Shown in pieces: positions 216 to 3,200 of a stretch of 64,000 nucleotides of DNA. Source of the DNA: Macrostomum lignano (lineage: Eukaryota); the NCBI GenBank assembly GCA_002269645.1, contig NIVC01002088.1, forward strand, positions 62,001-126,000, given 5' to 3'. The stretch's first letter is position 1. Each line of letters starts with the position of its first letter. The notes under the pieces were generated by a model that had not been told where the DNA came from, did not search any database, and saw only the letters and a list, made by a program, of their open reading frames with translations. Position numbers and translations under genes: made by a program.

Positions 216-3200
216 ATCACATTCAAAACAATCCAGCTGTCAGTCAGCACGCCAGGGATAAACTTTCTACCGCATCCGATCGAAACTCAACTGTTCGAGG
301 CCATCATGCTGGGCAGCTGGCATCTGAAAGCTTGGAAAATTGAGGTTCTCGGATTCCCCAGTGCGGCATGTTAGTAAACTGTGTTGCAATTGCTTTGCTT
401 GAATATGATCCATAAAGTTTTGTTGGAACAAGAAAAATATGATGAGGCAGTGTATCTCAGTGGCAGGAGTCAGAGCCACAAATAGAATGACTCCCCAAAA
501 TCATGAGGCCGATCTTTGTTAATTTTATACCCTACAGGTTAAAATTCTTGGGTTTTTTTCAGAAATTTTTCAGATTTTTTAGGAATTCACTTGCAAATTG
601 GCTGACTCAGCTGACCCAGTTCTCTAATGATCTCTAATGAGAAAAATAGGATAATAGAAGCACCAATCATTTGAGTCGGGAGATGCCAGCCTTGCATTCC
701 GGGCTTTATTTATAGTTATATAAACACTTCTGCTACCACTTCCAGTGCGCAGCGTTATTTCAACCAGCAATTACACGGTAGAAAAGATCGTTACTGAAGA
801 GGAGCAGGTGATTCGGATTGACTTCAAGGAAATATTCTACTTGACCTCCATCCGAGTGAGCAATTTGGACACCAATAAAGGCTTCTACTTGACGTACCGG
901 GTCACGCAGAACAGCACGGACAGGCAGTTGCGAACGCCCTGGTACGACCAGGTGTACAATGTGAGTATATTTCAAATGTATTCATACGCTTTCCTTTTTA
1001 ATTCGAGTTGCTGAGATTGGATGCACTTTTAAAAGTTATCTAACGTAGCAGTCACGTGACTGCTTTCCAGCCATTCTAGTAGATTGGGCAGCTGTTTGAG
1101 TCAAAATTAACAAATACGAGCTAGGCTTTAGACTGCGTGTTGGAGTAACTGAAGCCGATTCTTATTGATGCCACACTTGCCCCACCTGCACTCTAATCAC
1201 GCCGACAGTTCCAGTGACTTTCCCTGAATTACTTCTTCCAATGATTTTGCTCGCTGTTAGATCAAAAACCTTATTACATGTGTCACACCTGCAGTTCTCA
1301 AGTCTTAATCTGGCCGACGACTTCTTCATGCCGGTGATTTTTACGCCGATCTCCGTTGAGCTGCACTTTCAAGGCAACGCCAGTGTGCAAACGACAGACA
1401 TCGTGAATATCAGAGGCGTTGAAATTAACGGTAAGGATGACGAAATTATACTGCATATAACTACTTGAAATAGTAGAAGCAAACCAGAAAAATATGCTTA
1501 CTTATACATACATACACAATGCACGAGTATTACATAAGCTGCATTTTATTCAAAAATCAAATTGCATACTTTAAATGTTTTGAATAAAAACATAGGGTGT
1601 ATCTCATGCCTAACGGAATTATTCGAGCCCATTCGAGACCATTTTACCCTGGTCTTCTAGACGAGTGCCCGCAAGGCTGGCGGCCACTCTACAACATCTG
1701 CCTCAGGATTGTCCCGTCAGCTCTGGACTGGAACAGTTCGCTGCAGTACTGCCAGAGCCGCTACTGGAATGGCAAGAATGGCACTCTGTTCATGCCCAAG
1801 ACTGCCGTGCTGCGCAACTTCGGTCACATGAGGTCAGAGCTTCACTATTTTTAATATCGATAGATACATGTAGTTTCATATCGATAGACCCGTCAGATGC
1901 AATAACTTTCTACGGAAAATTCCGGAAAGTATCGTAAGCAAATGCGCGGTAGAGTGGTGAATTCGAGTCTTTACACGAAACTATTAAAGAAGACAAATGA
2001 ATCACTAAGTTCTAGCTTTTATAAATATGGTTTGATATTCACTAAAAATGTGACCATTAATAAAATAGCGTTCTTGGCTTTGGGGAGTTTGTTCTTCAAA
2101 CGTGAAATTGATCCAACTACTACTGTGTCAGTTAAGTTGCTTACAATATCGAGGTACCCAGACTCTTGATCATCAATCTCCTTTTAGGAACATGCAGTTT
2201 CACGTCGGTGCATACCGAAACTCTTCAACCGGCCGCTGGTACTGGCTGGATGGAGAAGAGGTTGAGCAGGGAGCATTCTACATGGGCCAGCCTCAGAGCA
2301 GCTCGTGTGTGTACTTGTCTACCGACTACAATGGGCTGTATAAGATCGACTGCTCTGCAAGTCTCTACTTCTTGTGCCAGATTCCTAAAAAGATATGTAA
2401 GTGAAAAATTATTTATATATAATAGCGTCAATCAAGTCATATTGACTTGCTTACATATATTTAATTCCAGGGCCAGATCGGGAGCAGACTGTATTGCTCA
2501 ACACTTTTTACTCAAACGGGGTAGGGGCAACGGATGACAGTCAGCACTACACACAGGGACCAATGTATGAACTGCTTAGCATGTGGACCATGGATGACGC
2601 GTACAAGTACATTCCAGTCGTATATGATACATGGAACGCAGCAAACACGGAAAGTTGGGCTATATCTATTGGAACCGAGAGTCTTCAAAGCTCAACCAGC
2701 AAAACCCCTGCGTATCAGAAGACTCGTGTAGAAAATGGTGAGTGCTTACTATCTAGATTTGTCTGCATGTAGTAACTGCAGATTCAGGTACTGACGACAC
2801 TCCAAATCACGCTCATTCTTCTACTGCTAAGGCTGTCTGGAGCCCTTGCTGTACCCGGAACCCGGTATGCTCGGAGTTCGCATCAATGCATCGTCTTCTA
2901 ACTCGAGACGGGGTCCCGAAAAGGCATTCCTTGGCTCAGTGATGTCGAGGGAGGGTGAGTTTTTTAGTTTTCTTATAATTTTTTGACTGCTTGACCCAGC
3001 GCTTCTTGATTAACTTTAATTGCAGACCACGTGCAGTGCGCACTAAGCCGAGCCGACTACCAGTTCTATGACGGGCCGTGGTCTGTTACTGAGCAGGGAT
3101 ATGCCTGTGCAAACTGGGACACAGTGACCAGCACCTACAAGGACTACAACAACTCGTGTCTGGAATGTGAGTTTGACTGCCATAGGTATCTGTTGCGGCT

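Follow-up and report, generated by a model that had tools for sequence, protein, structure and literature searches.

Patchy homogenisation of exons between tandem polycystin-1-like receptor genes of Macrostomum lignano, probably by recurrent interlocus gene conversion

The window, a stretch of 64,000 nucleotides of the Macrostomum lignano contig NIVC01002088.1 (positions 62001-126000), contains two paralogous gene copies, A and B. They are close neighbours sharing one orientation, head-to-tail on the + strand at an offset of ~46-47 kb.

1..39920, + strand: copy A, a polycystin-1-like (PKD1L/REJ-type) receptor gene, 5' end cut off by the window start
41499..64000, + strand: copy B, its tandem paralogue, 3' end cut off by the window end

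Exons 1-45 of copy A, in the numbering of this analysis, occupy positions 216-18365; all their boundaries carry AG/GT, the phases are consistent, and this exon model agrees with the annotated models P0001, P0003, P0002 and P0005. The final exon extends from ~39747 to 39917, and ~6.5 kb of the gene (~870 aa) lies upstream of the window start. An apparent frameshift at exons 31/32 was removed by a donor at 13437, a junction borne out by P0002, P0005 and P0013. Exons 1-45 of copy B were placed at 47578-64000 by exon mapping, self-blastn and blastp of open stretches, and its 5' exons are traceable from 41499 by tblastn with the N-terminal part of P0003. The protein collection holds no gene model for copy B, two B-derived queries returning A-type proteins only, and B is known here from the assembly alone. 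Over ~2,800 codons both copies display open frames under purifying selection, save for a single 1-nt indel in each:

5343..5347, + strand: 1-nt shortfall in exon 13 of copy A (GGGG-T in A, GGGGAT in B); the A frame is shifted in the assembly
63066..63072, + strand: 1-nt shortfall in exon 42 of copy B (CTTC in B, CTTTC at A 17404); the B frame is shifted in the assembly

At the exon 13 indel of copy A, P0001 reads QTVGGISLRQ, i.e. G5, and the NCBI model P0005 begins just downstream. The absence of one coding indel from the independent model P0001 implies that consensus quality is imperfect; the two frame-breaking indels, together with the unannotated copy B, indicate that gene models in this region need curation.

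The gene product, of ~8,700 aa, is a polycystin-1-like receptor. Its Pfam domains comprise Lectin_C, Kringle, Fibrinogen_C, PKD (4.5e-15), REJ (E = 1.4e-26), PLAT (2.2e-5), Polycystin_dom (9.6e-29) and PKD_channel (1.2e-31). The protein thus combines REJ, PLAT, the polycystin domain and a C-terminal PKD cation-channel-like transmembrane region, the set that places it among PKD1 / PKD1L / REJ proteins. Among relatives with a name, the closest are PKD1L2 proteins from molluscs, a hemichordate and amphioxus (24-28 % identity). A GPS autoproteolysis motif, expected after REJ and ahead of the first transmembrane segment, found no match among the fragments scanned with Pfam. Relatives bear PF01825. 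Self-blastn, confined to the window, revealed neither a third DNA copy nor an internal DNA repeat that could act as donor, and an Rfam scan of the window returned no structured-RNA families. Inspection of the long copy-specific introns for ORFs and inverted repeats gave no clear transposon protein and one 102-nt inverted repeat only.

The A/B comparison covers 45 exons over ~18 kb, with lengths, phases and AG/GT sites identical in both copies. Per-exon dS is bimodal rather than uniform, falling either at 0-0.23 or at 1.3 and above, up to saturation. Heterogeneity among exons at 1,038 four-fold sites reaches chi2 = 375.9, a value attained by 0 of 5,000 permutations (mean 44, maximum 92.1), and the longest identical four-fold runs span 47 sites (exons 4-5) and 66 sites against a 99th percentile of 25. 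The similar sequence is confined to eight tracts, mostly single exons or small exon groups, which account for 46 % of the CDS with a pooled dS of 0.104; elsewhere silent sites are saturated (pS 0.73), and A and B are therefore old tandem duplicates.

T1, 1661..2379, + strand: exon 4 (1661-1832) and exon 5 (2188-2396), 97.2 % identity to B 48424-49006 in spliced coordinates
T2, 3028..3153, + strand: exon 8, 92.1 % identity, an older patch
T3, 3772..3969, + strand: within exon 11 (3752-3997), 95.5 % identity, both edges 20-28 nt inside the exon
T4, 4154..5544, + strand: from mid exon 12 (4078-4247) to mid exon 13 (5241-5585), 95.7 % identity in spliced coordinates
T5, 9151..9722, + strand: exons 22-23 at 97.8 % identity, and intron 22 (82 nt, 13.4 % diverged)
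T6, 9870..9964, + strand: 95-nt patch within exon 24 (9830-10041), 92.6 % identity
T7, 11991..13921, + strand: exons 29-32, 95.5 % identity, divergence homogeneous over the four exons
T8, 16506..18365, + strand: exons 39-45 and introns 39-44, counterpart B 62172-64000; exons at 98.2 % identity, introns 0-18 % diverged

The region that drew attention to the locus was T1, whose exons encode C-type lectin domain 1 (Lectin_C E = 1.5e-7). The sequence-only reading had described its first exon as differing from the B copy (48424-48595) at three positions, and exactly three of 172 nt mismatch, at 1662, 1710 and 1775. The second exon, described there as near-identical, matches B 48798-49006 at 94.3 % identity (12 of 209 nt differ). 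The flanking introns are unalignable, as had been stated: introns 3, 4 and 5 (230/92, 355/202 and 74/77 nt in A/B; intron 4 at 1833-2187) align at the shuffled level, only 4-11 of the 30 nt bordering each splice site match, and identity is lost within ~5 nt of the splice sites. The neighbouring exons 216-369, 1295-1430 and 2471-2737, said to be diverged even at silent sites, retain 55.8, 69.9 and 64.8 % identity with saturated pS of 0.71-0.82. Similarly, exon 14539-14775 is diverged from 60690-60926, with 67.1 % amino-acid identity and ~26 of 79 codons differing. The pattern is wider than that reading had reported, recurring in the eight tracts over the comparable 18 kb.

Divergence within tracts amounts to 1.8-7.9 % and differs between them (P = 1e-4), which points to several events. 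T1-T7 are internal patches with diverged exons on both sides, an arrangement that neither a simple partial duplication nor a single crossover would produce. The 5' edge of T8 coincides with the acceptor of exon 39, and the tract ends somewhere past the window. Divergence is heterogeneous within it (P = 0.003), with exons 42-43 and introns 42-43 far more diverged than their neighbours. All three lectin domains of the comparable region fall in tracts, domain 2 starting in exon 23 (T5) and domain 3 lying in exons 44-45 (T8). GC3 is raised in tracts (0.655, against 0.566 outside; Fisher P = 1.5e-6), as expected for GC-biased conversion. Exon length predicts conversion only as a trend (median 197 vs 147.5 nt, P = 0.064).

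All 44 introns are kept in both copies at the same positions and phases, and for 36 of them, among these the introns on either side of exons 4 and 5, the alignment is at the level of shuffled sequence. The remaining eight (22, 31 and 39-44) are short (82-147 nt), most having the same length in both copies, and are co-homogenised with their exons at 82-100 % identity over aligned positions, which implies a genomic DNA template for at least those tracts. Many introns of 71-115 nt are likewise unalignable; intron length alone thus fails to explain which introns block tracts. Within T4, intron 12 is unalignable (993/239 nt in A/B). The unalignable introns of T7 are 29 (733/94 nt) and 30 (85/526 nt), and its intron 31 (83/84 nt) is co-homogenised, its 6 % divergence being the same as that of the T7 exons. 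Tract edges lie closer to splice junctions than random positions do (median 13 nt vs 49 nt, P = 0.0004), and about 6 of the 15 fall 20-77 nt inside exons 11, 12, 13 and 24. The description of the homogenisation as exon-bounded therefore stands for the exons on which it was based and fails as a general rule. The 20-nt exon ends beside unalignable introns are 11.2 % diverged, compared with 3.9 % in exon interiors and 2.0 % at ends beside alignable introns (P = 5e-9 and 9e-7). At the four junctions that lie inside tracts at unalignable introns, ends are 6.9 % diverged vs 3.9 % in interiors (P = 0.09). T1, T4 and the part of T7 formed by exons 29-31 are continuous on spliced coordinates across introns at the shuffle baseline, and their exon parts are homogeneous in divergence (P = 0.16, 0.77 and 0.65).

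Independent A-type protein models repeat the state of copy A in T1-T7 and display a mixture of A and B states in T8. The UniRef models P0001, P0003 and P0007, which come from a different annotation, carry the A state at all covered A/B differences of T1-T6 (16/16, 15/15 and 7/7). P0013 is A-like in the diverged exons, at 81 of 81 informative sites matching either copy, and B-like in T8 at 6 of 10 informative sites (three-way test; P = 3e-7 vs the diverged exons). P0014 matches A along 536 aa of the channel region with 100 % identity, after which 20 of 46 residues differ past the last splice junction. A second genomic copy, A', is 99.4 % identical to A and covers the equivalent of 23.6-38.8 kb of the window, outside the A/B-comparable part; it served solely to calibrate intron stability and assembly resolution.

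The mosaic is probably the product of recurrent homology-dependent interlocus (ectopic, non-allelic) gene conversion between old tandem duplicates, with exons acting as homology islands. Copies A and B would keep swapping short stretches of genomic DNA by this route. Purifying selection would hold the exons similar and introns would gather indels and insertions, so that homology would be worn down to islands made of single exons or of groups joined by short, still-homologous introns. Conversion tracts would begin and end inside these islands and be blocked by heterologous introns, and many edges would consequently lie at splice sites, some inside exons, with exon ends beside heterologous introns converted less often. 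Events of different ages would overlap, and synthesis-dependent strand annealing or short heteroduplex repair may be the molecular pathway. Patchwise ectopic conversion limited by intron divergence was one of the two routes proposed by the sequence-only reading, and it agrees with the bimodal dS, the diverged flanks, the raised GC3, the exon-end edge effect and the tracts crossing still-homologous introns. Counting against it, T1, T4 and T7 run across unalignable introns, which calls for a spliced template, several events that coincide or a mutation-conversion equilibrium; the edge effect at their internal junctions is weak, and many short introns have escaped as well. Neighbouring homology islands at conversion-mutation equilibrium would give the spliced continuity just as readily. 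The same reading had further suggested that binding modules are shuffled between copies in the manner of diversified immune receptors. This suggestion is not supported, the effect being homogenising, with pooled dN/dS of 0.18 in tracts and ~0.06 outside, and no cassette array being present; the gene is a polycystin-1/REJ-type receptor with two copies only in the window.

The second proposed route, conversion through cDNA, would have a processed transcript of one copy repair the other from a spliced cDNA or RNA template, generating patches contiguous in the mRNA and leaving introns untouched. The patches of exons 4-5, mid 12-mid 13 and 29-31 are of this kind, contiguous across shuffle-baseline introns with homogeneous divergence, and the edge effect at their internal junctions is not significant (P = 0.09). 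Recombination of genomic DNA with reverse-transcribed cDNA would indeed yield patches that respect exon junctions, but its hallmark is precise intron loss (PMC3652778) and 0 of 44 introns are lost in the M. lignano pair. Introns 22, 31 and 39-44 are moreover co-homogenised, demonstrating a genomic template at the same locus, and a spliced template accounts for at most three tracts whereas DNA-templated conversion alone accounts for all of them. With 44 introns kept in place and intron sequence included in three tracts, the cDNA proposal finds no support as a general account and we judge it improbable. It is similarly doubtful that those three patches, taken by themselves, are single events templated by the spliced transcript of the sister gene with the introns left in place; if they were, RNA- or cDNA-templated patch repair would preserve gene structure and would explain tracts of equal age that are contiguous in the mRNA and split by non-homologous introns. 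In the case of T8 alone, a somewhat stronger contender, although still an unlikely one, is an unequal crossover or a more recent partial re-duplication inside the tandem array, giving a chimeric gene with a recent 3' part. The tract has an abrupt start at exon 39, takes in every one of its introns and has not ended where the window does, and P0014 shows that in some copy 536 aa of channel sequence stay identical to A. Such an origin is at odds with the internal heterogeneity at exons 42-43 and introns 42-43, which implies nested events, and with the combination of A and B states inside T8 in P0013, and it leaves the internal patches T1-T7 unexplained.

The near-identity might also be false, the reads of one copy having built or polished the consensus of the other. 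Coding exons of both copies do contain 1-nt indels where short homopolymers occur, and M. lignano assemblies hold near-identical duplicated loci such as A'. Mis-polishing, however, sharpens only regions that are already similar and cannot turn ~70 % identity into 98 %, differences of 1.8-7.9 % persist in the tracts, and P0001, P0003 and P0007 give the state of A at every covered difference of T1-T6. The assembler separated A from A' at 0.6 % divergence and should therefore separate tracts at 2-8 %, and tract edges follow splice sites and intron homology, which are invisible to read mapping. An assembly or polishing artefact is thus very unlikely. Even less credible is a history with no exchange at all, in which the tracts had been preserved by a very low mutation rate or by extreme nucleotide-level constraint (from splicing signals, codon usage or an embedded RNA element). 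Their higher GC3 and the inclusion of all three lectin domains would suit constraint, but identical four-fold runs of 47-66 sites stand beside saturated exons of the same gene, homogeneity reaches into eight introns and some edges fall inside exons. The window also contains no Rfam families, and P0013 mixes A and B states in T8.

The locus adds a clear new case to a process already known and modelled, and it reveals no new mechanism. In a single gene pair, homology erosion under interlocus conversion seems to be represented at every stage: exons and introns fully homogenised together, introns beginning to drop out, isolated exon islands, sub-exon patches and fully escaped exons. The pair offers useful material for measuring the minimal homology and tract length that ectopic conversion needs in a flatworm, as well as for testing models of divergence-dependent conversion. 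Within this M. lignano gene family, paralogue trees, dS-based dating and read mapping would be misleading unless carried out exon by exon. A literature search on gene conversion in M. lignano returned nothing specific.

In the duplicated Amylase genes of Drosophila, concerted evolution is reportedly restricted to the coding region. There, as in the M. lignano pair, coding sequence is said to be homogenised and adjacent non-coding DNA diverged; the whole Amylase coding region is affected, whereas the M. lignano gene is an exon-by-exon patchwork. The mammalian pairs BMP8A/B, DDX19A/B and TUBG1/2 exhibit long-lasting concerted evolution of gene parts (PMC2720389). They resemble the present case in the homogenisation of part of the pair, in GENECONV-type tracts and in the raised GC3 of converted regions. 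In contrast to these pairs, which were chosen for homogenised introns, most M. lignano tracts exclude flanking introns. Human PKD1 and its six pseudogenes on 16p13 illustrate how nearby duplicates trade sequence by gene conversion (PMC11919013, PMC2564946), and share with A and B the polycystin-1 family and the proximity of the duplicated copies. The human duplicates are nevertheless recent (~97-99 % identical throughout) and are pseudogenes donating deleterious variants, while the M. lignano copies keep open frames. A parallel in the form of the mosaic comes from Arabidopsis halleri HMA4, for which a simulation model combines divergence-dependent interlocus gene conversion with purifying selection on exons (bioRxiv 10.1101/2025.10.29.685298). 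The model predicts the same qualitative outcome, in which exons and short introns are homogenised and other introns escape (10.1101/2025.10.29.685298). Like HMA4, the M. lignano genes are head-to-tail tandem copies with similar exons and short introns and with other introns diverged. The HMA4 copies are young (~0.4-6 % divergence), whereas the background of the M. lignano pair is saturated (pS 0.73), its islands descend to ~95-400 nt, most of its short introns have escaped too and whole exons have dropped out. The M. lignano pair represents a much later stage of the process seen in HMA4.

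Comparison of the window with itself reveals two colinear genes on the + strand, offset by ~46–47 kb, in eukaryotic sequence of GC content ~0.44 with GT...AG introns.

Before window start to ~39.9 kb, + strand: copy A
~41.5 kb to past window end, + strand: copy B

The exon model rests on open frames conserved between A and B, common AG/GT sites and phase continuity. The shared part comprises 45 exons (A 216–18365; B 47578–64000), all of equal length and phase in the two copies and with AG...GT at each boundary. The junctions are confirmed by the annotated A-type protein models P0001, P0003, P0002, P0005 (an NCBI gene model of 6,983 aa on NIVC01002088.1, assembly GCA_002269645.1) and P0013. 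The locus of P0005 on that contig (L002) matches the window letter for letter over 49,920 nt, which puts the window at NIVC01002088.1:62001–126000. A frameshift between exons 31 and 32 was an initial appearance only, the junction (...EAMTN/PRYVLML...) being confirmed by annotated A models. Judging by P0001 and P0003, exon 1 may truly start at 236 and not at 216, which touches only an already diverged exon. Pfam matches in the comparable part are to C-type lectin, kringle and, weakly, F5/8-type-C domains, and downstream in copy A to Fibrinogen_C, PKD domain, REJ, PLAT, Polycystin_dom and PKD_channel; the PKD domain lies within one uninterrupted open exon of 1,407 codons (28069–32289), the other exons being mostly 70–400 nt. 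The closest named relatives are PKD1L2 of molluscs, a hemichordate and amphioxus, at 24–28 % identity. Thus, the gene is a giant (~8,700 aa) polycystin-1-like/REJ-type receptor with a lectin-rich ectodomain, and its domains and relatives place it outside the immune-receptor families of which the proposed shuffling between copies had reminded the sequence-only reading.

Synonymous divergence per exon (Nei-Gojobori) is bimodal and not uniform: dS is 0.00–0.23 in exons 4, 5, 11–13, 22, 23, 29–32 and 39–45, 0.49–0.85 in exons 7, 8 and 20, and at least 1.3 or incalculable through saturation in all remaining exons. Heterogeneity among exons at 1,038 four-fold sites gives chi2 = 375.9 (permutation mean 44, maximum 92; 0 of 5,000 reach the observed value), and runs of identical four-fold sites extend to 47 in exons 4–5 and 66 in exons 39–41 (99th percentile 25). 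The sequence-only reading had described exons 4 (1661–1832) and 5 (2188–2396) as near-identical patches among diverged neighbours, and its description holds: 3 of 172 nt and 12 of 209 nt differ, respectively, identity is lost within ~5 nt of the splice sites, introns 3, 4 and 5 show no alignment above that of shuffled sequence, and exons 1, 3 and 6 are 56–70 % identical with saturated synonymous differences. Exon 35 (14539–14775), which it had also named as diverged, retains 67 % amino-acid identity. A two-state HMM applied to the spliced alignment calls eight high-identity tracts, together 46 % of the coding sequence.

High-identity tracts between copies A and B (+ strand; A coordinates)
T1, exons 4–5 (1661–2379): divergence 2.8 %
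T2, exon 8: divergence 7.9 %
T3, inside exon 11: divergence 4.5 %
T4, mid exon 12 to mid exon 13: divergence 4.3 %
T5, exons 22–23: divergence 2.2 %
T6, inside exon 24: divergence 7.4 %
T7, exons 29–32: divergence 4.5 %
T8, exon 39 to window end (16506–18365): divergence 1.8 %

Pooled values are dS 0.104 and dN 0.018 in the tracts, against pS 0.73 (dS ~2.8) and dN 0.174 outside; purifying selection acts throughout, in the tracts (dN/dS 0.18) and outside them (~0.06). Divergence is unequal among tracts (P = 1e-4) and T8 is internally heterogeneous (P = 0.003), therefore several events of differing age are superimposed. GC3 is 0.655 inside the tracts versus 0.566 outside (P = 1.5e-6); raised GC3 is also found in other converted gene pairs (PMC2720389). 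The mosaic extends 5' of the comparable part, where the exons of B share 52–97.6 % protein identity with the A-type model P0003.

Most introns (36 of 44) lie at the shuffle baseline, their splice-adjacent 30 nt included. The other eight (22, 31 and 39–44), which measure 82–147 nt and in most cases have the same size in both copies, are homogenised together with their exons, at a substitution divergence of 0–18 % that is usually somewhat higher than in the flanking exons. Intron sequence needs a genomic template, and DNA-level exchange is therefore demonstrated for T5, T7 and T8. Introns of this genome are without intrinsic instability, as gene A has a second genomic version on a different contig (L001, NIVC01004376.1), which matches window 23618–38763 at 99.4 % identity over 10.5 kb, introns included. 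The gene A locus is thus present in the assembly in at least two near-identical versions, allelic, homeologous or recently duplicated. A (CTTA)n microsatellite of ~74 copies (33815–34108), one frame of which reads LLTY repeats, is clearly longer in L001 (~10.2–10.95 kb). Gene A also carries a 15-nt tandem repeat between transmembrane-region exons (37270–37437; 11 copies, 97 % matches) and two tandem-repeat arrays in an intron region (22444–22662 and 22955–23109; 17/51-nt and 7/49-nt periods).

The proposal that homogenisation is exon-bounded stands in part. Tract edges lie nearer to splice junctions than random positions do (median 13 versus 49 nt, P = 0.0004), with 6 of 15 no more than 10 nt away from one (P = 0.0035), but about six fall 20–77 nt inside exons 11, 12, 13 and 24. 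The 20-nt exon ends abutting unalignable introns are 11.2 % diverged, compared with 3.9 % in exon interiors and 2.0 % at ends abutting co-homogenised introns (P = 5e-9 and 9e-7). Such an edge effect is expected if residual homology blocks act as separate islands whose margins fall less often inside conversion tracts. Several introns differ in length between A and B (intron 12, 993 and 239 nt; intron 20, 229 and 2,060 nt; intron 29, 733 and 94 nt). The extra DNA of B intron 20 (53930–55989) is GC-rich (~0.50) with positive GC skew, and its ORFs are short and without recognised domains. Intron 18 measures 1,142 nt in A and only 104 nt in B; the A copy contains a 102-nt inverted repeat (7228–7329 and 7516–7617, 87 % complementary, 186 nt apart) that resembles an inserted small foldback or MITE-like element. 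Intron 31 of B (59430–59513, 84 nt) is open in frame with its flanking exons, and a B transcript retaining it would be translatable; its A counterpart (13438–13520, 83 nt) has a TAA.

The observations as a whole are most simply explained if two old tandem duplicates undergo recurrent, homology-dependent interlocus gene conversion, as the sequence-only reading had supposed in proposing patchwise ectopic conversion limited by intron divergence. Purifying selection would retard exon divergence while introns gather indels and copy-specific insertions (for example introns 12, 20 and 29); homology would contract to exons or small exon groups, with heterologous introns blocking tracts, and blocks under the homology threshold for exchange would escape permanently. 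The locus displays what look like all stages: exons and introns at 97–100 %, introns dropping out, lone exon islands, patches smaller than an exon, and exons that have diverged completely. Such a mosaic is predicted by a published simulation in which conversion depends on divergence and purifying selection operates (10.1101/2025.10.29.685298).

A spliced template (cDNA, as that reading also put forward, or RNA) would account for the fact that each of T1, T4 and T7 forms one unbroken stretch of uniform age in mRNA coordinates although unalignable introns interrupt it, and the edge effect at their internal junctions reaches only P = 0.09. Nevertheless, no intron is lost, intron loss being the hallmark of cDNA recombination (PMC3652778), intron 31 is co-homogenised within T7 and exchange at this locus has demonstrably drawn on genomic DNA, which leaves this route improbable. 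T8 alone could derive from unequal crossover, because its 3' limit lies past the window end. Pure nucleotide-level constraint would keep silent sites alike without exchange, but it is excluded in practice by the homogenised introns, the tracts that begin or end within exons, the lack of Rfam matches in the window and the mixing of A and B residues in P0013. This model matches A at 81 informative sites and B at none in diverged exons 33–38 and is A-like by 16:1 in T7, and in T8, 6 of its 10 informative sites show the residue of B (P = 3e-7 versus background), which reflects either a very recent exchange between A-type and B-type sequences or a chimeric model.

A polishing artefact, in which assembly consensus made the copies alike, is unlikely given the intron evidence, both within the pair and between L001 and A, and the independent protein models. 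P0001, P0003 and P0007 (UniRef; different annotation) carry the A residue at every covered A/B difference in T1–T6 (16/16, 15/15 and 7/7), and the minor differences left in the tracts are thus reproducible and do not stem from polishing noise. The assembly does break the frame twice. Exon 13 of copy A is 1 nt short at a G-run (5343–5347; GGGG-T in A, GGGGAT in B), where P0003 omits the region and P0005 begins at a Met just downstream; the probable cause is an assembly error in the homopolymer or a polymorphism, because the independent P0001 reads QTVGGISLRQ across the site (G5). Exon 42 of copy B is 1 nt short at a T-run (63066–63072; CTTC in B, CTTTC in A). No B-type gene model occurs among the protein-collection matches to B-derived queries; copy B is thus unannotated, and it may be silent or have had its reads assigned to A. 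P0014 (UniRef, M. lignano) keeps 100 % identity to A through 536 aa of the polycystin channel; past that point 20 of 46 residues are different, the change coming exactly at the last intron of gene A (39172/39747), which points to another copy, possibly B, with the same exon-bounded mosaic at its 3' end. Exon 6 (2471–2737; 267 nt, skipping preserves the frame) is missing from P0001 and P0003, and exons 33–34 (14022–14467) and 37–38 (16118–16414) are wholly or partly missing from P0002 and P0013; all are present in P0005, and the omissions may be alternative splicing or model artefact.

The locus is a case of partial concerted evolution by interlocus gene conversion, a process known from many gene pairs and, within the same gene family, from human PKD1 and its pseudogenes (PMC11919013, PMC2564946). 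A literature search yielded no account of the locus itself, nor of gene conversion between paralogues of M. lignano. What is unusual here is the degree, with a saturated background, at least eight tracts and islands down to ~95–400 nt, and the locus thus represents a new, unusually clear case of a known process.
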